A stretch of DNA of 40,689 bases from Salisapilia sapeloensis CBS 127946 (lineage: Eukaryota; Protista; Oomycota): NCBI GenBank assembly GCA_023334545.1, contig JAADVB010000173.1, forward strand, positions 1 to 40,689, read 5' to 3'. Every line of letters starts with the position of its first letter. The first letter of the stretch is position 1. A program made the position numbers and the translations under genes. The notes under the pieces are model-generated. The model did no database searches and had not been told where the DNA came from. It saw nothing but the letters and a program-made list of their open reading frames with translations. Shown one piece after another: positions 10,988 to 21,654 of the stretch.

Positions 10988-13900
10988 ATGCCGGCGAATC
11001 CAGGCGGGACGCGAAAAGAGCGCTTGATGCGTGCTAAGATGAAGAAGAAGATCCAGGAGGAGGCATCCGATCCGACTGCATCAAGTGCTGCGCTCACGTA
11101 TGACGATATCTTGCAAATGTCCGACCTGTCGGAGAATTCGCTCTTGGAAAACTTGCGCAGGAGATACGAAAACGATATGATCTACACGTACGTAGGTCCG
11201 ATCCTCATTGCGATTAACCCGTATCAGGGCATGCCAAAGCTCTATAGCGAGCGGCGGATGACCGAGTACTACGGTCGAGAGATCGGATCCTTACCTCCAC
11301 ATGTATTCGCACTCGCTGACTTTGCCTACCGTCAGCTCATCCAAGGCGGTGCAGTCGATCCACAGAACCAGTCGATCATCATTAGTGGCGAGTCCGGTGC
11401 AGGAAAGACCGAGACGACAAAGATCATTATGCAGTACTTGGCACGCGCCACGAGCTACAAGCGTCCTCCAACCGCGAATGGCGTCGAGCCAGACCATGAG
11501 CCGATCAACGGCGACGCACCCATGTCCGGGACTCTAGGCAAGCTAGAAGAGCGTGTGCTCGAGTCGAATCCGTTGTTGGAATCCTTTGGTAACGCCAAGA
11601 CGCTACGTAATGACAATAGTAGTCGATTTGGTAAATTTATCGAGATCCAATTCAACCATCACGGCAAGATCGTCGGTGCGGAGATCATGAACTTCTTACT
11701 GGAGAAGACGCGCATCGTGTCGCAAAGCATTGGTGAACGGAACTACCATATCTTTTACCAGCTACTGGAAGGAGCAGACGATGAATTGAAAACTCGATTG
11801 CGACTCCAGACGGTGCATGACTATGAGTACTTACGTCATAGCGAGTGCTTTACGATCCCAGGATGTGACGACGTCGAGGACTTTGCCACGACAAAAAAGT
11901 GTATGGAGACGATTGGTCTTGACGCTGGTAAGCAAGAGAACGTGTTTGAACTTCTTGCGGCGGTTCTGCATTTGGGTAATTTGCGTGTGGAACAAGAGAA
12001 TGAGACGGCGAAGCTTGCAGATGAAGAGTCGGAGCAGAGCATCATGTTCGTCGCGGAGCTGCTGCAAGTGTCTGGAGACGCGCTTCGGAAAGCCTTGTTG
12101 ACACGACAGTTACATGTTGGTGGGAAAGTGATTGAGCAGCAGCAGAATGTGGATCAAGTGGTGGATAAGCGAGATGCATTAGCGAAAGGCATGTACTCTT
12201 CGTTATTCATCTGGCTCGTGCAAGAGTTGAATCGTACGATCTCTCGGCCTCGTGACAAGTGGGGATTCATCGGTGTCTTGGACATTTACGGCTTTGAAAA
12301 GTTTGACTGGAATACGTTCGAGCAGTTGTGTATCAACTATGCGAACGAAAAGCTCCAGCGACACTTTAACCAGCACATGCTCGAGGTGGAGCAAGAAGAG
12401 TATGAGAAGGAAGGAATCGACTGGACACACATTGACTTCCAGGACAATCAGCCATGTCTAGATTTGATTGAAAGCAAGTCGCTGGGGAAGCCTGGCATCT
12501 TCATTACGCTCGATGACATTTGGCGATGGAAAGGAGATGAAGCGAATAAGAAGTTTGTCAGTATCTTGCACGCGAACTTTGGGAAAGACACGAGCAAAGG
12601 TCCAGCGAATGCCAAATCGCAGCATCCGTTCTACATCCAACCAAACGTTGATGCAGACTTGACGTTCGGGATTAAGCACTACGCTGGAGAAGTCCTGTAC
12701 GACGCAAGTGGTTTCAACGACAAGAACAATGAGAACTTGAATGACGACATGAAAGACATTGTACGCGATAGTAAGAATCCGTGGATCCGAGACATCTTTT
12801 CACTCAACGTCCAGTCGCTTCAGGCCATTCCTGGTGGTGGAGCTAAGCGTCCGACGGATAATGCGTCTCGAAGACCTTCGGAGAAAGGGATGAACCGTCG
12901 GGCGTCGGACGTGAAAGGCGGAAATAAGGGTGGACGCAACCTTCGAGAAGTGTCTGTCGGAGCACAATTTCGTTTCCAGTTGCAAGAGCTCATGGGTAAG
13001 ATCAGTGCGGCGAACCCTCGATACGTTCGTTGTCTTAAGCCGAATGAGTTCAAGCGTCCTGGTGAGCTGAATGATGACGACTGTGCTCGACAGCTCAAGT
13101 ACTCTGGTATGATGGAAGCAATTCAGATCCGTCAGCAAGGGTTTGCTTTGCGGGAAGACCATGACGTGTTCTTCTATGACTATCAAGGTCTAGCTCCGTC
13201 AGCCGAAGTCATTGATGATCTCGTCAAAGTGATTTCATCAACTCTTGGCGCAGGAAAAGAGCAGTGGCAACTTGGTAAGACGAAAGTCTTCCTACGACGT
13301 GAATTCGCATTTAAATTGCAAAAGCTCGACCAGTTCCGAAGTAAAGGTGCTGCGAGGCGTATCCAGCGATGGGTTCGGTACCTCCGGATGAAGAACCAAG
13401 TCATTGTTGCTCAATCGGTCGTCCGCCGGTACATTGCACGCAGAAAGTTGAAGACGTTAAAGGCTGCTGCGAGACGAATCGTAAGTATTTTACGTGTTAA
13501 AGTTGCTGTGAGCAAGTTTGAAGCTCTGCGCTTTGAACATCGATACAAGTCGCAGCATGCGATTGTAATCCAAAGGATTGCACGGGGCTACTTAGTTCGT
13601 AAGCAGCAGCTATTAGATCCATTCGGTGGTTTAAATGCAAAGGATTTGGACGCGAAGATTAAGGAACTGGAGGCTGCAATCGCCAAGGCGGCGGAAGATA
13701 AACAGTTTGAGCTTTGCTCCAAGCTCCAAGTGGACTTGGAACCTGTCGTGAATGCACGCAAGAAAGTTCGTACGGCTAAGGAACTAGATAATGAGATTGT
13801 TCGCTTGAACAAGGCGGTGGATGAAGCTGCGGGGAGTAAGCAGTATGCCAAGTGTGCAGAGCTTCAGAAGGAGTTGGAAGAAGTGCAGGAACAGCGGAAG

Positions 13901-16900
13901 CATGTGAAGGAAGACTTGACCGAGTTGACGGCATCAGAACTGGATGAACGGATTGCACAGATGGAAGGACTGGTGAAGGAAGCTATGGATGCTCGGAACT
14001 TTGAAAAATGTGGACAGCTGCAACATGATTTAGATCAACTCGTTGCGATTCGAAAGACGAAGCAGAGTGCAGAGGAGATGGATGACGAGATTGAAGCTGT
14101 TAATCAACAGCTTGCGAATGCCATGAAGGAAAAGAACTTTGGCAAGTGTGCGCAGTTGCAAAAGGAGCTGGATGATAAGAAGAGTAAGCGATGGGAACAG
14201 TATCCTGATACGCCAGTTAAGGAGAAGCTACCGGAGAGAGAGGGACCAGTGCCGACGGCACCTACGACATCTCCTGCTGCATTGCAAGGGAAGGATGCGC
14301 CGAAGCCGACGCCGAAGAAGACGCCACCGCAGAAGGCTACAGCGCAAAAGACACCTGCAGCGCAGAAAAGTCCTGTGCAGAAGACTCCTGCGGCACAGAA
14401 GAGTCCGGTGGCGAAACCGACTGCACCTGTGCGTCCAGCGAATGGAAACCGAGTGAAGGCGAGTGTCCAGGCTCCGGCCGTGTCTCCTCCGCAAGTGGCG
14501 AGAGGACGCAAGAGCGTCGACAGTATCAGTGGCATCGGTCGTCCTCGATCCGACTCGAACGGATCGGCTGTATCGGCGTCGTCGCATGCTCGATCTACCA
14601 TCTCTATGCGCTCTACTGTCTCCAAGACGCAGCGCAAGGGAGAAGACGCATCGCGTACAGTGTCTCGCTTACGTCCGGCCAAGGCGTTGACGATGGGAGA
14701 GGACGTGACGGTCGCTGAAGCTGCTCGCGAGATGAAGAAGAAGCGAACTTCGGCGGTGCTTGCGACGAACGCCCAGGGAGCCTTGACTGGAATTCTAACA
14801 GACACCGATACGGCACGTCGTGTCATCTCCCAAGGCCTCGATCCAGATGATACGCTGCTTAGGGACGTCATGACAGGCAACCCGAGCTGCGTGTCGCTTG
14901 AAGACAGTGCGATTGAGGCACTGGACTTGATGCTCAGTGGCAAATTCCGACACTTGCCGGTGGTTAGTCATGACAATGGAAACGTTGTCGGTGTCTTGAA
15001 CGTCGCCAAGTGTCTCCATGACGCCATTCGTCGATTGGAAAAGGTCACGTCGTCTCTACAGGAAGAGCTCGAGAACTCTCCTCTGCGCAGTATGCTGGAA
15101 AAAGTACTTGCACCGACACTACGTGACGTTTTATCCAAGTCGGATGAACCTGAGACGCCAGTCGTGTCTCCAGAAGACACAGTCGCAGACGTGACGCTGC
15201 TAATGGCCAAGGATAAGAAACCAGCGCTTGTTGTGTCGGAGATGGGAGAATTAGTCGGTATCTTTACACCCAAGGATCTCCTCCATCGTGTCATTGCAGC
15301 AGGATTAAGCGTCGATGATACGCTCGTGGAAGAAGTCATGACAGAGCATCCAGAGTCTGCTTCTCCCGACACGACTGTCCTCGATGCTTTCCACATTATG
15401 CACGACGGCAAGTTCCTCAATTTGCCAGTGGTTGACCAAGAGACTGGTGAGATCTTCGGCATTGCAGATGTCCTCTCTCTATCCTCGTCTGCTTCCCTAG
15501 AGCAAGGAGAGTCTGGACAGCTCTGGAGCGCAGCGTTAGAGTTACCGACACAAGGAAAGGATGTCTTCGATGACACGGCGTCCATGTCGTCCTTTACCAG
15601 TCGAGCTCGACAGCGTAAGGAGAAGGAGAAACCTTCTCGAGCTGTCTCGAGCTTACGTCCGACGGCTGCAGTGACTGTATCCTCCCAAGGCTCTGTCGTC
15701 GATGCAGCTGTGCTCATGAAGCAAAAGCATACGGACGCGGTGCTTGTAGTGGACGATTCGAGTGGTCTACTCGTTGGTATTCTTACAGATACAGACGTGT
15801 GTCGTCGTGTGCTTGCGAAGGACCTGGATCCGGAAGCTACGACCGTCGCGGATGTCATGACAGGTGACATTCAGTACGTTGCGCCGGAAGACAGTGCCAT
15901 CGATGCGCTGTTGACGATGCAAGACGGACACTTTCGACATTTGCCGGTCGTGGAGAGAGACAGTGGGACCATCGCAGGTGTGTTGAACATTGGCAAGTGT
16001 CTTTATGATGTATCAAAGCGTCTGGAGCATGCATCCGAGTCGACGGAGCAGATGAAAGCGTCACTCGAGTCCCAAGGCAGTGCCGTCCAAAAGGTACTTG
16101 GTCCTATGCTCCAGCGCATGGCGGATCCGACCATCGATTCGATCCTCCAAGCTCAACGGAAGAAGGGAGATGCCGGCGCTCCGACCGTCACGCGCAACAT
16201 GACAGTGTCTCAAGTCGCGAAGCTCATGGGAGAAAGCAAACAAGCAGCTCTTGTCATTGAGAATGAAGTGACAAACCGACTTATCGGTGTCTTCTCTCCT
16301 TATGAACTAGCGATGAAAGTGATTGCGCAGGGTATGGACCCAGAGACGACACTTCTTCAAGAAGTCATGCTCACAGACCCGGATGTCGCGACACCTCAGA
16401 CGCAGGTGGTGGAAGCGCTGCAGATTATGCATGAGACTCAATGCCTGAACCTTCCTGTCGTCCAGGATGAAGGCAGCAGTCGTGTCGTTGGTCTTGTCGA
16501 CGTCCTGGCGTTGAGCTACGGTACGATCGATGCGTTGTACGGTCAGAACCGAGAGCAGATGGAAGAGTTCTGGAGCGCAGCGTTGACGCTAGAGCAACCT
16601 TCCCAGCCTGGTGGCAAGGCGACGCACAAGCGTACACTAGCAAAGGTCGCGGATAAGGAGAAGAGCCGGACGGTGGAACAGCTGCGTCCGTCCAAGGTGC
16701 TGACGATTGAAGAGCACGCGACTGTTGATGAGCTGAGTGTCATGATGGGTCGTAGTCGATCTGATTGTGTCCTTGTGGTGTCGGACGATGGAATGCTCGT
16801 GGGTATCGTCACCGACACGGACTTGGCGCGTCGTGCCGTGGCGCAGAATCTACCGACGGATATCACGACGGTCGGGCAGGTGATGACCAAGGACCCGGCG

Positions 16901-19900
16901 TTCGTATCGACTGCCGACCCGGCCATTGACGCGCTCTTCCGGATGCTTGAAGGCAAGTTCCGACACTTGCCTGTGGTCGAGACACCAGAGAACGGCGGAG
17001 GTGTCGTGGGTATCCTCAAGATCGACCGCTGTCTATACGATGCAATTCGGAAGATGGAAAAGATGGAGGCATCGACGTCTCAAATGCGCCAGACGCTCGG
17101 AAAGCGAGGCAACTTGTCAACGCTGCTAGGTCCGATGGTCGATCGCATGTTCTCTCCGAACGTCCAGACGATTGTGAATGGAGACACAGCGGCACCGCGT
17201 GTCCAGCCTTATACGAGTGTGTTGGAAGTCTCGCGGCAGATGGCGAGTACAAAGAAAGCAGCACTTGTCGTGAGCAATCGTGGACAGTTCTTTGGTGTCT
17301 TTACACCGCAGGATCTCGTGGACAAAGTTTTGTCGAAAGGACTGCCGGTGCACACGACACCTGTGTGTGAAGTCATGACGGAACCGACGCAAGCCCTCGT
17401 GTACGCTGAGAACACGGTGTTGGATGCGCTGCATGTGATGCACGACCAACGATCTCTCTACCTTCCAGTCCTCCAGTCGGAGCAGTCGCCTACAGCGGTT
17501 GGTCTCGTGGACGTGCTGTCGCTAAGCTTTGGATCGTTCGCCAAGGGCGATCCGAGTGACTGGCGTGAGTTCTGGAACACGTCGTTCGAAGCTGCGGGCG
17601 ATGATGACGAGACGTCTTCGCACCATAGTCTCCAGAGCTCTTTCTCCATGAGTCGTGTGACGGGGAATAAGGAGCCTCGTAAGGTCCAGACCGTCACGGG
17701 AGACGCTCGACCTGTGTCGAAGCTGCGTCCGAGTAAAGCTGTGACGATCTCGGAGAGTGCGACAGTTGCGGATGCAGCAGCCGAGATGGGCAAGACCCAC
17801 ACAGACGCTGCACTCGTGATTTCGAGCGACGGAATGCTCAAGGGTATCTTGACCGACACAGACGTGACGCGTCGTGTCGTTGCGCTCGGGAACGATCCGA
17901 ACTTTGTGAGCGTAAGTGCTTGCATGACACCGAATCCGAAGTTTGTGAATGAAAAGGATAGTGCCATGGATGCCATGTTCACTATGCTGGATGGTAAATT
18001 CCGACACTTGCCTGTTGTCGATACGCAAGGTCTTGTCGCCGGTATGCTTCGTATTCAAAAGTGTCTCTATGACTCGATTACGCGTTTAGAAAAAGCACAA
18101 AAGACATCTAGTAGCTCTTTACGAGAGAATCTAGAGAAACAGCTCATGTCGTCTGGATTCGGACAAGGCCTCGGGAAAGGACAAGGCGCTTTGGATGAAC
18201 TCGTGACGCCGATGATTGAGAAACTCTTGTCGCCGACGTTGGATACGCTAGTCAGTCGAGAGGATATGCCGCCGCTTGTCCATCCTACGGTCACGGTCAT
18301 GGAAGCTGCAAGGCAGATGGCATCTACGAGGAAAGCTGCGTTGGTCGTAGAGGACTTGGAGCTCGATGGAGACCTCGACCGACGCTGGAGTAACGCTAGC
18401 TCTGCTACTGGCAAAAGACTCACTGGTGTGTTTACACCTAAAGACCTTCTTCTTCGAGTCGTTGGAGCCGGACTGGACCCTGCCATGACGCTTGTCAAGG
18501 ACGTGATGACGTCTAATCCCGAGACCGTGGCGCCTAGCACGTCGCTTGTGGATGCACTGCATATTATGTACGAGCATACGTTCCTGCACTTGCCAGTAGT
18601 AGAAGACGGATCGAGCACGATCATGGGCTGTGTCGACGTGCTGTCGCTTTGCTACGGCACCTTTGCCACTGGCGCAACGGAAGGTGGAGGCGACTGGCGC
18701 GCCTTTTGGGATATGTCCCTCGCACTTACCAAGGACGATGATGAGCGCAGTAGTGTCAGTCGCAGTGTCGCTGGGTCTCGACGTCCGGCTGCTAGTAAAC
18801 GCGGAGGTCGATCACGCAGTCACACGGCGTCGTCTGCTGGTAGTCAGAAGAAGGAGGAAGTGAATCGCCCAGTGTCCAAGCTCCGGCCGAGACGTGTCAC
18901 GCAGATCGACGAGTACTTGACTGTCTCGGAAGCTGCGAAACGTATGCGAAAGGCACGTGCGGATGCTGTCGTGATCACAAATGAAGACGGGGAGCTACAT
19001 GGTATCCTAACCGATACGGACATCACGCGACGTGTACTTGCACGGAACTTGGATCCGGATGTGACAGATGTATCTGCAATCATGACGGTGCATCCGAGCT
19101 GCGTACGTAGTGATGAGCAGGCGATTGAAGCTGTCACGAAGATGCTGGAAGGACGCTTTAACCATTTGCCAGTGACGTCGCCGGAAGGTGTCATCCAAGG
19201 CATGCTGGACATTACCAAGTGTCTCTACGATGCGATCAACGGGATGGAAAAGGTGCAACAGAGTACTGAGGCAGCTGCATCGGAGCTGTCGAGAGACTTG
19301 GGGCCGAACGCTTCGAGCTTGAACAAGTTGCTTGGACCGATGATGGATAAGATGGTGCGTCCGACTGTCGGCACAGCGTTGGAAGGAGAGAAGATGCCTC
19401 CGATTGTGGATCCTCAGACGTCTGTGAGTGAAGCTGCGATGCTCATGGCAGAGACGAAGAAGGGCGCCGTGGTACTGGATGACGGAGAGCTCGTGGGTAT
19501 CGTGACACCCAAGGATTTGCTCCGCAAGCTTGTTGCGAAGGGTCTGACTGCAGACGAGACGGCTGTGGAGGAGGTCATGTCCGTCGACCCAGAGTACGTC
19601 TGTCCGGACGCTCGTATCCTCGACGCTTTGCGACTGATCCATGACTCTGGTCAGCTCTTCGTTCCGGTGCTGCATGAACAGAGTAGGCAGGTGATTGGCA
19701 TGGTAGACGTGCTTTGTCTTAGCTATGGTCAGTTCGCTTCATCTTCTGGTAGCTCTGGTGGAGACTGGCGCCAATTCTGGCAGACAGCGATGCATGCGCA
19801 GGATGAAGCGCAAGGCATGTTTGATCATGATGATACAGTGTCGGTTGGTACGATTGAAGAGTTTGAACGGAGCGAGATGCAGCATGAGATTGGATACGCT

Positions 19901-20563
19901 CGTGCGCCATCTCAGACCGGATACTCGGAGCTTGGCGAAAGTGTGTCTGTTGTTAGTGGCGCGCAGTCGATGGCAACGACAGCCATGGCTGCACAGATGC
20001 GTGACGACCAGTTCATCTTCAAGGTGAGTGATCGAGCGACGGGGAGTTACCATCGTCTGATGAGCCGCTTTGACTCGCTCGATACGCTTGTGAAGCAAGT
20101 TCGAGCCAAGGTGAGTGCCACGGCTGACGATGAAGTTCGACTTAAGTACGAGGATGATGATGGCGACCTCGCTCTCTTGACGACGGACGAGAGTTTGATT
20201 GAAGCTGTTCAAATGGCCAAGAACGCTGGGTGGAAACGCATTGTTCTCTTGGTCGACATTGTCAAGTCTGGTGAAGACGACAAGCAGTCGAAAGGCAAGG
20301 GTAAGAGCAAACGTAATCGGAAGCTTACGGCTGTGGAGGAAGATGCAGATGAGAGTTCGAGCTCGGAAGACGAGAGTTCGGATGAAGAGGACCGAAAGCG
20401 ACGGAAGAAGAAAGGAAAGAAAAAGGGCGGGAATCGCAGTAGTTGGGGTGAAATGTGGGGCCGAGGGTCGTTTGGTGACAAAAAGTCGCTCTTGATCGCC
20501 GGTAGCTCGGTGCTGGTTGGCATCGGGTCGATGGCAGCGATGTTCATGCGAAAGAAGAATTAA
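10988..20563 (+). CDS. Myo29: Unconventional myosin, stramenopile CBS/PB1 type (class XXIX-like), 3191 aa, single exon
   Basis: Motor motifs GESGAGKT, NDNSSRFGKFI, LDIYGFE, CINYANEKLQ, DALAK and YVRCLKPN. 3-4 IQ motifs (about 13350-13610), 4 UVR-like repeats (13637-14195), a P/A/K-rich linker, and five four-CBS modules starting about 14654, 15638, 16667, 17708 and 18866. Then PB1 (FIFKV...LKYEDDDGDLALL, about 20010-20270) and a C-terminal hydrophobic helix plus RKKN. The class label is from recollection of myosin classification, not from a tree. Confidence 0.95.
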   Translation: MPANPGGTRKERLMRAKMKKKIQEEASDPTASSAALTYDDILQMSDLSENSLLENLRRRYENDMIYTYVGPILIAINPYQGMPKLYSERRMTEYYGREIGSLPPHVFALADFAYRQLIQGGAVDPQNQSIIISGESGAGKTETTKIIMQYLARATSYKRPPTANGVEPDHEPINGDAPMSGTLGKLEERVLESNPLLESFGNAKTLRNDNSSRFGKFIEIQFNHHGKIVGAEIMNFLLEKTRIVSQSIGERNYHIFYQLLEGADDELKTRLRLQTVHDYEYLRHSECFTIPGCDDVEDFATTKKCMETIGLDAGKQENVFELLAAVLHLGNLRVEQENETAKLADEESEQSIMFVAELLQVSGDALRKALLTRQLHVGGKVIEQQQNVDQVVDKRDALAKGMYSSLFIWLVQELNRTISRPRDKWGFIGVLDIYGFEKFDWNTFEQLCINYANEKLQRHFNQHMLEVEQEEYEKEGIDWTHIDFQDNQPCLDLIESKSLGKPGIFITLDDIWRWKGDEANKKFVSILHANFGKDTSKGPANAKSQHPFYIQPNVDADLTFGIKHYAGEVLYDASGFNDKNNENLNDDMKDIVRDSKNPWIRDIFSLNVQSLQAIPGGGAKRPTDNASRRPSEKGMNRRASDVKGGNKGGRNLREVSVGAQFRFQLQELMGKISAANPRYVRCLKPNEFKRPGELNDDDCARQLKYSGMMEAIQIRQQGFALREDHDVFFYDYQGLAPSAEVIDDLVKVISSTLGAGKEQWQLGKTKVFLRREFAFKLQKLDQFRSKGAARRIQRWVRYLRMKNQVIVAQSVVRRYIARRKLKTLKAAARRIVSILRVKVAVSKFEALRFEHRYKSQHAIVIQRIARGYLVRKQQLLDPFGGLNAKDLDAKIKELEAAIAKAAEDKQFELCSKLQVDLEPVVNARKKVRTAKELDNEIVRLNKAVDEAAGSKQYAKCAELQKELEEVQEQRKHVKEDLTELTASELDERIAQMEGLVKEAMDARNFEKCGQLQHDLDQLVAIRKTKQSAEEMDDEIEAVNQQLANAMKEKNFGKCAQLQKELDDKKSKRWEQYPDTPVKEKLPEREGPVPTAPTTSPAALQGKDAPKPTPKKTPPQKATAQKTPAAQKSPVQKTPAAQKSPVAKPTAPVRPANGNRVKASVQAPAVSPPQVARGRKSVDSISGIGRPRSDSNGSAVSASSHARSTISMRSTVSKTQRKGEDASRTVSRLRPAKALTMGEDVTVAEAAREMKKKRTSAVLATNAQGALTGILTDTDTARRVISQGLDPDDTLLRDVMTGNPSCVSLEDSAIEALDLMLSGKFRHLPVVSHDNGNVVGVLNVAKCLHDAIRRLEKVTSSLQEELENSPLRSMLEKVLAPTLRDVLSKSDEPETPVVSPEDTVADVTLLMAKDKKPALVVSEMGELVGIFTPKDLLHRVIAAGLSVDDTLVEEVMTEHPESASPDTTVLDAFHIMHDGKFLNLPVVDQETGEIFGIADVLSLSSSASLEQGESGQLWSAALELPTQGKDVFDDTASMSSFTSRARQRKEKEKPSRAVSSLRPTAAVTVSSQGSVVDAAVLMKQKHTDAVLVVDDSSGLLVGILTDTDVCRRVLAKDLDPEATTVADVMTGDIQYVAPEDSAIDALLTMQDGHFRHLPVVERDSGTIAGVLNIGKCLYDVSKRLEHASESTEQMKASLESQGSAVQKVLGPMLQRMADPTIDSILQAQRKKGDAGAPTVTRNMTVSQVAKLMGESKQAALVIENEVTNRLIGVFSPYELAMKVIAQGMDPETTLLQEVMLTDPDVATPQTQVVEALQIMHETQCLNLPVVQDEGSSRVVGLVDVLALSYGTIDALYGQNREQMEEFWSAALTLEQPSQPGGKATHKRTLAKVADKEKSRTVEQLRPSKVLTIEEHATVDELSVMMGRSRSDCVLVVSDDGMLVGIVTDTDLARRAVAQNLPTDITTVGQVMTKDPAFVSTADPAIDALFRMLEGKFRHLPVVETPENGGGVVGILKIDRCLYDAIRKMEKMEASTSQMRQTLGKRGNLSTLLGPMVDRMFSPNVQTIVNGDTAAPRVQPYTSVLEVSRQMASTKKAALVVSNRGQFFGVFTPQDLVDKVLSKGLPVHTTPVCEVMTEPTQALVYAENTVLDALHVMHDQRSLYLPVLQSEQSPTAVGLVDVLSLSFGSFAKGDPSDWREFWNTSFEAAGDDDETSSHHSLQSSFSMSRVTGNKEPRKVQTVTGDARPVSKLRPSKAVTISESATVADAAAEMGKTHTDAALVISSDGMLKGILTDTDVTRRVVALGNDPNFVSVSACMTPNPKFVNEKDSAMDAMFTMLDGKFRHLPVVDTQGLVAGMLRIQKCLYDSITRLEKAQKTSSSSLRENLEKQLMSSGFGQGLGKGQGALDELVTPMIEKLLSPTLDTLVSREDMPPLVHPTVTVMEAARQMASTRKAALVVEDLELDGDLDRRWSNASSATGKRLTGVFTPKDLLLRVVGAGLDPAMTLVKDVMTSNPETVAPSTSLVDALHIMYEHTFLHLPVVEDGSSTIMGCVDVLSLCYGTFATGATEGGGDWRAFWDMSLALTKDDDERSSVSRSVAGSRRPAASKRGGRSRSHTASSAGSQKKEEVNRPVSKLRPRRVTQIDEYLTVSEAAKRMRKARADAVVITNEDGELHGILTDTDITRRVLARNLDPDVTDVSAIMTVHPSCVRSDEQAIEAVTKMLEGRFNHLPVTSPEGVIQGMLDITKCLYDAINGMEKVQQSTEAAASELSRDLGPNASSLNKLLGPMMDKMVRPTVGTALEGEKMPPIVDPQTSVSEAAMLMAETKKGAVVLDDGELVGIVTPKDLLRKLVAKGLTADETAVEEVMSVDPEYVCPDARILDALRLIHDSGQLFVPVLHEQSRQVIGMVDVLCLSYGQFASSSGSSGGDWRQFWQTAMHAQDEAQGMFDHDDTVSVGTIEEFERSEMQHEIGYARAPSQTGYSELGESVSVVSGAQSMATTAMAAQMRDDQFIFKVSDRATGSYHRLMSRFDSLDTLVKQVRAKVSATADDEVRLKYEDDDGDLALLTTDESLIEAVQMAKNAGWKRIVLLVDIVKSGEDDKQSKGKGKSKRNRKLTAVEEDADESSSSEDESSDEEDRKRRKKKGKKKGGNRSSWGEMWGRGSFGDKKSLLIAGSSVLVGIGSMAAMFMRKKN

Positions 20564-20685
20564 GACTGGCGGATTAGAATTGCATAGTTGGTTTTTTGAC
20601 TTTTAAGGCACACGCACGTCGAGTGGAAAGGTGTGGTAGAACAAGGAAAGGATGAAGACCTGACGATTGTTATCTAGTATGTAGT

Positions 20686-21654
20686 CTAGACGCTTTCACT
20701 AGCAGTGTCGGACATGCTGTCTGAATGCTCTTGTTGCTTTTCATGTGCAATGTCGTCGGATGTGGTAGGCGAATCGGAGTGGAGAGAGATTTGGGAATGG
20801 CCGCGACGAGTCTTCTTTTTGAGAAAGCTGTCTTGGATCCAGAACTGGATGGCGTTCATCAGACACGGACATACGATCATGACGATCGCGAGTTCAAGCT
20901 TTGGGTACGGTATCAATGGCTCGAATAGCCATGCAGCAGCGGCTTCCAACGGAGAGTCGAAGAGGACGATGAATGATGCGATGATGAGTTTGGCGATGAA
21001 GATGATCACTAGCCAAGATACAAGCTGTAGTAACCATGCACTAGGACATGAGATAAGTCACGTTACACTATAAAACTGTGTACTTTTTGAGAAGTACCTG
21101 ACTTGTACGGGCTGACCGTAGTCGCCAGGCTTGGTCACTGAATGCCACTGCATGTTCAGTGCAATGTACGAGAAGAGCGAGAGGAGTGCCCAATTGAGCA
21201 CCACACCGATTGTTGTATCCAGTGTAAAGTTTACAAAGTACAGAGCACACTACAATGTAGACACAGTTAGAAGAGCTTTGAACATAGCGTCTTGTAGACT
21301 GTACCTGATCCGCTCCACCTGTGACTGCCCCGAGCTGGTCAGGATGACCTCTCTGATAGAGCACAATGGCAATGAATAAGTTGACAACATGTGCAAAGCC
21401 TGCACCGATGAGCTGCTTAGCTGCATCAAACGACCATATCTAGAGCATCCAAGATATCACTATGAACAGCAAATGCATGTGAACCGGCGTTTGAATATAC
21501 GTACGACAAGTGGCCGACGAGGTTCTTCCAGATATCGCTTGAGTACGAGGACAGAGATGGCAATGAGACCCAAGGCTAGTTGCACGAGAGCTGCAAAGCC
21601 TCCACTGAGCAACTTGCAGTCTCCTTCCGCAGCCACTTCGGCACTCCACCACAT
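20686..21654 (-). CDS. STIMATE: STIMATE/TMEM110 (yeast YPL162C-like) multi-pass membrane protein, 263 aa, 4 exons
   Basis: Exons 21505-21654, 21305-21439, 21098-21249 and 20686-21040; introns 65, 55 and 57 nt. Family motifs CKLL.G.F...VQ..LG.IA...L..KR..E.PRRP..IW.FD..KQ.IGA.FAH, C..YF.N..LDTTIG, GDYG.P, W..Q, LEL..VM.V.P..MN.IQFWI.DSFLK. Confidence 0.9.

Follow-up and report, generated by a model that had tools for sequence, protein, structure and literature searches.

Myosins that attach themselves to membranes are known from classes unrelated to the one considered here. Animal Myo19 attaches by its own tail to the mitochondrial outer membrane, and fungal class-XVII chitin-synthase myosins carry transmembrane segments; the tails of both are likewise unrelated, and contain neither CBS or PB1 domains nor a C-terminal tail anchor of the kind described below. 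[quoted passage not shown] The name myosin 29 (Myo29) is used in a diatom phylogeny (PMC9724779). In the literature searched we found no experiments on these myosins, only the 2007 classification and the diatom phylogeny.

A second group of described proteins resembles only the tail. These are the stand-alone proteins of the CBSCBSPB/NAS1/Mug70 type, in which one four-CBS module is followed by PB1 and by a terminal helix ending in basic residues, the arrangement also seen at the end of the Myo29 tail. The Arabidopsis locus At3g52950 corresponds to AtCBSCBSPB3 (PMC2694836), which has been called a homologue of soybean GmNAS1, or “NAS1-like” (PMC11526089). GmNAS1 and GmNAP1 are described, by two papers that cite the original work, as mitochondria-localised, AMP-responsive energy sensors (PMC11022614, PMC11720000).

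Gene structure and class assignment

The window, i.e. the whole stretch of DNA analysed (40,689 nt of contig JAADVB010000173.1 of the oomycete Salisapilia sapeloensis CBS 127946), contains a long myosin gene, whose features are listed in Table 1. Neither the list of open reading frames nor the translation revealed an internal stop in its 3191-aa frame, and the N-terminus of the encoded protein is polar. The gene is transcribed: contigs of the RNA-type runs X2 and X5, which also carry a spliced neighbouring gene, cover positions 15400-20596 colinearly and without a joint. All of the parts recognised by a first-pass annotation of this DNA (the motor, five four-CBS modules, PB1, an acidic/basic stretch and a terminal helix ending in RKKN) were found within this one frame.

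Table 1. Features of the myosin gene of S. sapeloensis (positions in the window; aa, residues of the encoded protein)
Feature	Position	Strand	Basis
Complete single-exon gene, 3191-aa myosin assigned to class XXIX	10988..20563	+	ORF and translation, stop codon included
Myosin motor domain, aa 39-770	11102..13297	+	Pfam Myosin_head PF00063, E 3e-223
P-loop	11387-11410	+	Motif located in sequence
Switch I	11609-11635	+	Motif located in sequence
Switch II	12281-12298	+	Motif located in sequence
Neck with IQ motifs, aa 786-882	13343..13633	+	Pfam IQ PF00612, E 2e-5, two stretches
Four helical repeats of ~45 aa, aa 884-1070	13637..14197	+	Read directly from sequence
Low-complexity linker, Pro/Ala/Ser/Lys/Thr-rich, aa 1075-1222	14210..14653	+	Composition count
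CBS module 1, four CBS, aa 1223-1530	14654..15577	+	Pfam, 4 stretches; module HMM positions 1-320
CBS module 2, four CBS, aa 1551-1881	15638..16630	+	Pfam, 4 stretches; module HMM
CBS module 3, aa 1894-2216	16667..17635	+	Four CBS by alignment, three by Pfam
CBS module 4, longer inserts, aa 2241-2593	17708..18766	+	Four CBS by alignment, three by Pfam
CBS module 5, four CBS, aa 2627-2948	18866..19831	+	Pfam, 4 stretches; AlphaFold pLDDT above 90
PB1 domain, type AB, aa 3006-3095	20003..20272	+	Pfam PB1; model pLDDT above 90
Disordered acidic-then-basic linker, aa 3096-3166	20273..20485	+	Sequence; model pLDDT below 50
Probable tail anchor: helix, aa 3167-3187, and predicted luminal RKKN (+3)	20486..20560	+	Top hydrophobic segment; conserved

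By its sequence the motor is catalytically intact, all three motifs (P-loop, switch I, switch II) being preserved. In the neck, IQ-like motifs lie at aa 792, 811 and 861; two of them pass the Pfam threshold and the third was recognised by reading the sequence. Each of the four helical repeats that follow contains an invariant Cys within the motif F/Y-x-x-C-x-x-L-Q. A UVR domain was considered for these repeats and rejected, since they gave no Pfam UVR match at E <= 1 and only sub-threshold, coiled-coil-like matches.

With Myo29 motors of oomycetes the motor shares 59-75% identity, in contrast to 26-39% with myosin paralogues of its own genome. The closest relatives (72-75% identity in the motor and 57-64% in the tail) come from Globisporangium, Pythium, Lagenidium and Phytophthora, which places the protein among stramenopile hosts, and the 35 long relatives found include proteins already named “myosin 29”, from Plasmopara halstedii and Albugo laibachii. 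In a maximum-likelihood tree of Myo29 motors and 19 own-genome paralogues, the motor fell within a 13-row Myo29 clade (support 98/96), outside of which all 19 paralogues were placed. The tail has the IQ motifs, short helical regions, numerous CBS domains, PB1 domain and C-terminal transmembrane helix by which class XXIX was defined. The protein is thus almost certainly a class-XXIX myosin orthologue. From its motor clade and IQ neck, through the short helical repeats and numerous CBS domains, to the PB1 domain and C-terminal helix, it agrees with Myo29 of stramenopiles and does not differ from described Myo29 proteins in any essential respect. The first-pass annotation regarded the fusion itself as not new, which is correct, as such an architecture defined the class in 2007 (PMC2375034). 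A correction is needed for the tail anchor, which is not a new observation either: a C-terminal transmembrane domain already forms part of the same definition. The architecture is therefore a known one, here represented by an orthologue from one more oomycete.

The CBS modules and their stand-alone relatives

A Pfam search with the whole protein recognised CBS domains (E 1.5e-142) in 16 stretches, and a module-by-module search identified 18 (4+4+3+3+4). Our count is 20, because two units in modules 3 and 4 align with CBS domains of the other modules, and because the AlphaFold model of module 5 shows four CBS domains. The figure of 20 given in the first-pass annotation is therefore upheld, with 18 domains detectable by Pfam and the other two visible only by module-to-module alignment. 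The five modules share 38-47% pairwise identity and could be aligned across their full length of ~320 aa.

Without exception, the 29 oomycete relatives recovered, whether they have both motor and tail or are fragments of the tail, carry five modules. Other stramenopiles have three to four, and in diatoms and other ochrophytes these were duplicated independently. Twenty CBS domains are the oomycete norm, in agreement with the published maximum of 18 when the sensitivity of Pfam is taken into account. An unusual expansion in S. sapeloensis was considered and ruled out, since every oomycete orthologue recovered, and every fragment of one, has the same number. In the module tree, each module position formed a clade of its own, extending from Saprolegniales to Peronosporales, which indicates that the five-module layout is older than the oomycete radiation.

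A likeness of the distal tail to plant and fungal proteins with a CBS4-PB1-TM layout had been proposed from the initial reading, and the comparisons bear this out. The last 592 aa matched plant CBSCBSPB3 over about 80% of the length with 33-36% identity (E 1e-58 to 1e-67), and fungal CBS-PB1 proteins of the Mug70 type with about 30% identity, and 109 of the 120 stand-alone relatives matched end in a TM helix. Moreover, the CBSCBSPB/Mug70 type and the Myo29 tail have in common the site motifs of CBS1 and CBS3, and the Lys and OPCA columns of PB1. These alignments show homology between the tail unit (four CBS domains, PB1 and anchor) and the stand-alone plant and fungal proteins of the CBSCBSPB/NAS1/Mug70 type. 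The relation is one of tail homology and not of membership: the stand-alone proteins are of about 540-750 aa, motorless and built on a single module, whereas Myo29 combines five modules with a motor. What is new here is the connection of the Myo29 tail with plant proteins for which mitochondrial AMP sensing has been reported, together with the likeness of the module model to AMPK gamma and the restriction of the canonical Asp to CBS1 and CBS3, both described below. No stand-alone copy of the CBS4-PB1-anchor unit was found in the genome or among the oomycete matches, and the short oomycete matches are apparently pieces of Myo29 gene models.

The terminal helix and its possible target membrane

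The terminal helix (aa 3168-3187) provides the most hydrophobic 19-mer of the entire 3191-aa protein (Kyte-Doolittle 1.96). The second-best 19-mer (1.48) lies inside a CBS strand and the others, which score lower, within CBS folds, so that the helix is the sole strongly hydrophobic segment outside the folded domains. It comprises 20-21 uncharged residues with a GRAVY of 1.8-2.0, and only RKKN stands between it and the stop codon. A single TM helix within about 30 residues of the C-terminus, in a protein that has neither a signal peptide nor a second TM segment, is the arrangement expected of a tail-anchored protein. The helix and its basic end were found in 33 of the 35 long relatives; the two exceptions, P0029 and P0030, have a C-terminus that is fused or cut in the gene model. 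Such retention indicates that this is not a chance feature, and the outcome that the first-pass annotation had named as a refutation, a helix missing from orthologues, did not occur. The tail after the helix comprises 2-6 residues (up to 9-10 in a few non-oomycete relatives) with a net charge of +2 to +4, and in stramenopile and plant members it nearly always contains at least two adjacent basic residues.

These observations also bear on the possibility that the segment is a buried or amphipathic protein-interaction helix, in which case the myosin would be soluble and recruited by an adaptor. Such a role would suit the composition of the helix, 47% of which is Gly, Ala or Ser in S. sapeloensis, and the low confidence of its model. 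It fits poorly with an uncharged stretch that tops the hydrophobicity of the whole protein, with the constant position of the helix so close to the C-terminus in stramenopiles, plants and fungi, with the disordered linker before it and the basic residues after it throughout these groups, and with the transmembrane domain described for class XXIX (PMC2375034). Furthermore, the helix varies in sequence and retains its hydrophobicity, as would be expected of a lipid-facing helix. We consider a soluble myosin highly improbable, and the terminal helix very probably a genuine tail anchor. Class-XXIX identity and tail-anchored topology, taken jointly, can also be held with good confidence.

The choice of membrane is more difficult, since the targeting rules for tail anchors come from mammals, yeast and plants and the host here is an oomycete. 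The RKKN end fits the dibasic motif of the plant outer mitochondrial membrane (PMC4154396), and in mammalian cells a test protein whose tail had a charge of +2.9 went to mitochondria (PMC5450235). Alternatively, the same protein might be inserted via the GET pathway into the ER, the nuclear envelope or an ER-derived compartment, which would make ER or vesicles, and not mitochondria or peroxisomes, what it moves or tethers. The ER tail-anchored proteins of yeast exceed a GRAVY of 1.75, and a sufficiently hydrophobic helix can outweigh the charge of the tail (PMC5450235); by this rule the helix described here, and still more so those of Aphanomyces (GRAVY about 3, up to 3.2), would be sent to the ER. 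The oomycete average is 2.18, and the fungal relatives combine a GRAVY of about 2.4 with a tail charge of only +1 to +2. The short basic tail kept in all stramenopile and plant members, its agreement with the plant dibasic motif, and the mitochondrial location reported for GmNAS1 and GmNAP1 all argue against the ER, which we regard as an unlikely destination. By analogy with the plant homologues, which are only about 35% identical to the tail, and in view of the moderate hydrophobicity of the helix and its dibasic end of +3, the mitochondrial outer membrane would be the most likely target, an assignment that we make tentatively and at a little under an even chance.

Other localisation data on the relatives are few. 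The only localisation found for a member of the plant CBSCBSPB family is that of OsCBSCBSPB4-GFP, in the nucleus and cytoplasm; it is uninformative, because the C-terminal GFP would mask a tail anchor. In the literature searched there were no localisation data for Mug70 or the Arabidopsis CBSCBSPB loci, and CBSCBSPB genes are absent from the main-text list of a paper on plant tail-anchored proteins.

Predicted nucleotide sites, the PB1 domain and a possible mechanism

The canonical ribose-binding Asp motif, G-h-h-T/S-x-x-D, is kept in only CBS1 and CBS3 of each module. Among modules from stramenopiles, plants and fungi, the Asp of CBS1 was present in 86 of 86 units (in the form G-I-h-T-D-T-D), and the corresponding position of CBS3 was occupied by Asp in 66/86 and by Glu in 14/86. 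The motif Asp is replaced by Lys or Arg in CBS2, a substitution which we take to resemble site 2 of AMPK gamma, and by Ser, Cys or Ala in CBS4 of oomycetes. Since only CBS1 and CBS3 retain the Asp motif, two canonical adenine-nucleotide sites are predicted per module, which would give the molecule about 10 and not 20.

In a Foldseek search with the model of module 5, the best matches were MJ1225, SSO3205 with AMP, and AMPK gamma, with a target TM-score of about 0.7 (0.66-0.76) at 13-15% identity. The archaeal ribosome-hibernation factors Sri and Dri matched the model equally well. A sequence search of the PDB with module 5 plus PB1 found no close solved relative, only generic CBS proteins (PH1780, E 2e-9; CBSX1/2). 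From the model, we infer that each module folds as an AMPK-gamma-like disc of four tandem CBS domains. AMPK gamma and archaeal MJ1225 are four-CBS adenylate sensors, and have this fold in common with the modules of Myo29. However, AMPK gamma uses three sites, in comparison with the two canonical ones predicted per Myo29 module, and the Myo29 modules are without a kinase partner, lie five in tandem and would be tethered to a membrane.

By this analogy, and from the likeness of the tail to the GmNAS1-type proteins of plants, energy sensing is a plausible function of the array. The CBS domains might instead form a structural or scaffolding tail, providing spacers, dimerisation surfaces or docking sites for proteins or other ligands, in which case Myo29 would be a constitutive organelle tether and not a motor gated by adenylates. 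NAS1, which is reported to dock NF-YC, offers a precedent for docking; one CBS unit in two is without the canonical Asp; Sri and Dri, which are four-CBS proteins with other partners, resemble the model as closely as AMPK gamma does; and five separately kept module lineages would fit five docking roles as well as five sensors. The invariance of the CBS1 Asp throughout the 86 modules, a degree of conservation typical of ligand sites, speaks against a purely structural role, as does the AMP responsiveness reported for the homologous plant proteins. We consider a scaffolding array doubtful. Regulation of the motor by adenine nucleotides is possible, and we put it forward with considerable caution.

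The PB1 domain was matched by Pfam at aa 3029-3090 (E 3e-9). It contains both a beta1 Lys (in F-K-V, aa 3011-3013) and an acidic OPCA motif (Y-E-D-D-D-G-D, aa 3054-3060), which identifies it as type AB, with both interaction surfaces. Among 51-62 relatives, the Lys column and two Asp columns are invariant, and the Tyr and further Asp columns are kept in at least 90%. A prediction of PB1 self-association scored 0.00 for a chain (20021-20332) that began at Lys3012, had lost the first half of beta1 and was folded without an alignment; these conditions probably spoiled the fold, and the score speaks neither for nor against self-association. The acidic/basic stretch of the linker that follows occupies aa 3117-3147; a related organism has an in-frame 3-nt deletion at position 20411 of this disordered region. 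The genome also encodes a separate paralogue composed of PB1 plus anchor (C700), which is under purifying selection. Among 2598 word-sharing candidates no further stand-alone PB1-plus-anchor protein was found at E <= 1e-5, which, for a word-based search with a short query, is weak evidence that none exists.

These elements can be arranged into a possible mechanism. The tail anchor would bring the protein post-translationally into the membrane of an organelle, with about 3150 residues remaining on the cytosolic side, and with such direct insertion the motor would need no cargo adaptor. Occupancy of the two putative adenine-nucleotide sites of each AMPK-gamma-like disc might alter the conformation of the tail or its PB1-mediated self-association, and this change could set the strength of organelle movement or tethering on actin. 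In its most complete form, the hypothesis holds that Myo29 is a self-anchored mitochondrial myosin with five NAS1-like AMP sensors in series, whose engagement or PB1 clustering would be set directly by local adenylate status, so that stramenopile mitochondria (or peroxisomes) might be steered or parked on actin according to energy demand. C700, which has no motor, would share the membrane with Myo29 as its partner or its competitor. As a whole, this scheme is speculative and rather unlikely to hold in every part.

To conclude, conservation of class-XXIX myosins extends over the sampled oomycetes and diatoms, and the link to plant AMP sensors turns what was a list of domains into a concrete hypothesis, that of an organelle motor equipped with an anchor and an energy sensor of its own. 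If this holds, adenylate sensing would be coupled directly to organelle positioning, a solution unlike the adaptor-based recruitment used in animals, fungi and plants. Oomycetes include major pathogens of crops and fish, and class XXIX is absent from their hosts, which gives these myosins practical interest as well.

The class-XXIX myosin and its domains

The open reading frame, the Pfam matches, the alignment of the modules and the hydrophobicity of the terminal helix all agree with the first-pass annotation, which had read this gene as a motor followed by four-CBS modules, a PB1 domain and a terminal helix ending in RKKN; that description is therefore correct for the coordinates given. In the motor, the P-loop and both switch motifs (I and II) are intact (motif inspection). 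The neck contains IQ motifs (Pfam), then helical repeats, in which Pfam recognised no UVR domain at E <= 1, the coiled-coil-like matches that it returned being below threshold, and these are followed by a Pro/Ala/Ser/Lys-rich linker. The five modules can be aligned end to end (38-47% identity). The twenty CBS domains originally counted are recovered in part: a module-wise Pfam scan gave 4+4+3+3+4 = 18, and the remaining two (modules 3 and 4) were recognised only because they align with CBS units from other modules. The protein ends in 24 residues made up of an uncharged helix (20-21 residues) and RKKN; no 19-mer elsewhere in the protein is as hydrophobic as that of the helix (1.96; the runners-up, at <= 1.48, lie inside CBS folds).

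Features of the myosin (myosin gene and neck repeats in window coordinates, domains in residues) and of the paralogue of its C-terminus
Feature	Position	Strand	Basis or remark
Myosin gene	10988-20563	+	one open frame, 3191 codons (ORF list, translation)
Myosin head	aa 39-770		Pfam, E 3e-223
Four helical repeats of ~45 aa, neck, after IQ motifs	13637-14197		invariant Cys in F/Y-x-x-C-x-x-L-Q (sequence reading)
CBS domains	tail of myosin		Pfam, E 1.5e-142
Starts of modules 1-5	aa 1223, 1551, 1894, 2241, 2627
PB1 domain	aa 3029-3090		Pfam
Paralogue of myosin C-terminus	C700:138083-138916; L006:1168-1845	minus	ORF, 226 aa from first Met

When the last 592 aa of the myosin were used as query in a word search limited to long proteins, 35 relatives were obtained. 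Twenty-nine of these are oomycete proteins of ~2000-3350 aa with a myosin head, CBS and PB1 domains, or tail fragments of such proteins; two carry the source name “myosin 29”, which is also listed in a diatom study (PMC9724779). The source genome, although its assembly amounts to only 22.4 Mb (1365 contigs), has ~21 myosin motor loci. The motor of the window is closest to those of oomycete Myo29 proteins (59-75% identity), less close to ochrophyte relatives (43-45%) and least close to the paralogues in its own genome (26-39%). The motor-domain phylogeny that the first-pass annotation had called for (maximum likelihood) placed it inside a 13-row Myo29 clade (98/96), which contains none of 19 own-genome paralogues. 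The gene belongs, as an orthologue, to class XXIX, a known class of myosins for which about 18 CBS domains and a transmembrane domain at the C-terminus were published in 2007 (PMC2375034); the tail anchor is thus already known, as part of the definition of the class.

One relative from a public assembly, P0035 (2442 aa), has three CBS modules, a PB1 domain and a tail anchor, and a motor just 29% identical to that of the window, which forms a very long branch outside the Myo29 clade. Either this tail occurs in a second lineage of myosins, or the gene model is a poor one.

Conservation and transcription of the tail

With a profile made from the modules of the myosin, five modules were detected in each of the oomycete relatives, against three or four in other stramenopiles. 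In the module tree each of positions 1-5 forms one clade, from Saprolegniales to Peronosporales, which indicates that the five-module layout is older than the oomycete radiation and that each module has been retained since. Ochrophyte modules group by lineage, not by position.

In 33 of the 35 long relatives the C-terminus consists of a hydrophobic helix and, after it, basic residues; in the other two the gene model is either joined to a neighbouring gene (P0029) or truncated within a further repeat (P0030). The anchor claim, which a lack of conservation of the helix in orthologues would have refuted, withstands this comparison. The oomycete anchors have a mean helix GRAVY of 2.18 and a C-terminal segment of 2-6 residues (net charge +2 to +4).

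The likeness of the tail to the CBS4-PB1-TM layout of plant and fungal proteins is borne out by alignment with its last 592 aa: identity is 33-36% to plant CBSCBSPB3 proteins (E 1e-58 to 1e-67) and ~30% to fungal “CBS and PB1 domain” proteins. The same type of helix with a basic end terminates 109 of 120 proteins among the matches listed. The short oomycete matches, at least two of which share C-terminal residues with a full-length Myo29, look like pieces of Myo29 gene models. Besides the myosin, no four-CBS module or stand-alone four-CBS/PB1 gene was detected in the source genome. In oomycetes this ancient CBS4-PB1-anchor unit seems to exist only as a myosin tail, as judged by word-based searches and a 22-Mb assembly of unestimated completeness.

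Contigs of the sequencing runs X2 and X5 are colinear with window 15400-20596 (three mismatches, no joint). Both skip 57 nt bounded by GT..AG, on the minus strand, in the neighbouring gene (window 21040-21098), which the DNA-type run X1 keeps. In this X2 and X5 act like RNA, so the myosin gene is transcribed unspliced in its 3' half, anchor codons included (the evidence being assembled contigs, and the run type a software guess). The same intron shows expression and splicing of the convergent gene downstream. In runs of a related “organism B” (95-99% identity), 3 nt are deleted in frame at window 20411, within the charged linker of the myosin, and 2 nt at window 20592, just past its stop codon; transitions make up most of the remaining listed differences.

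Anchor destination and a motorless PB1 paralogue

Hydrophobicity analysis gives the myosin the topology of a tail-anchored protein, and the terminal helix with RKKN is consistent with the tail-anchor layout originally proposed. The evidence on mitochondria versus the ER points both ways: the yeast threshold (GRAVY above 1.75) and the very hydrophobic helices of Aphanomyces speak for the ER, whereas RKKN (+3, dibasic) fits the plant outer-mitochondrial-membrane motif, which favours mitochondria or a shared mitochondrial/peroxisomal location (PMC4154396). Also in favour of mitochondria, a tail of +2.9 sent a test protein to mitochondria in mammalian cells, those of +4.9 and +0.9 directing it to peroxisomes and the ER, respectively (PMC5450235).

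The PB1 domain combines the Lys of beta1 with an acidic OPCA motif, both of which vary little or not at all among 51-62 relatives, and it is by sequence of type AB. In other families such domains form head-to-tail oligomers. The paralogue on contig C700 consists of PB1 only (Pfam E 5e-11), a charged linker (Ser/Arg-rich, acidic/basic) and a tail anchor ending in RRKHKD; upstream lie stop-filled frames and no CBS modules. It is 53% identical to the last 279 aa of the myosin, the PB1 being much closer. Saturated synonymous sites (pS 0.64-0.78) and a dN of 0.18 in the PB1 region point to an old duplication and to purifying selection on the copy. On the same membrane, this could partner the myosin through PB1 without a motor of its own. 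A word-based search with this short query, which is weak, found no similar short proteins elsewhere.

The CBS modules as candidate adenylate sensors

Both folded parts of an AlphaFold model of module 5 and PB1 have pLDDT above 90. Its best Foldseek matches include MJ1225 (an archaeal AMPK-gamma homologue), SSO3205 bound to AMP, many AMPK gamma chains (target TM-score ~0.7) and also the archaeal ribosome-hibernation CBS factors Sri/Dri. The Asp of the motif G-h-h-T/S-x-x-D is usually read as the mark of a competent CBS ligand site. In the 86 modules compared, all CBS1 units keep it and most CBS3 units have Asp or Glu there; the position is always Lys/Arg in CBS2, and Ser/Cys/Ala in oomycete CBS4. 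This pattern predicts about two competent sites per module, i.e. about ten per molecule and not twenty.

The plant family includes At3g52950, which is AtCBSCBSPB3 (PMC2694836) and is called a homologue of soybean GmNAS1 (PMC11526089). GmNAS1/GmNAP1 are reported to retain NF-YC10a on mitochondria, and this binding to be inhibited by AMP (PMC11022614, PMC11720000). Though known at second hand, they offer an experimental precedent, in a homologous stand-alone family, for both the organelle membrane and the adenylate gating proposed by the first-pass annotation.

The idea of a self-anchored, adenylate-gated motor is strengthened by the conserved anchor, the AMPK-gamma-like modules with their conserved site motifs and the homology to reported mitochondrial AMP sensors, and narrowed to about ten predicted sites. 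The hypothesis of an organelle motor and energy sensor is now concrete and cheap to test.
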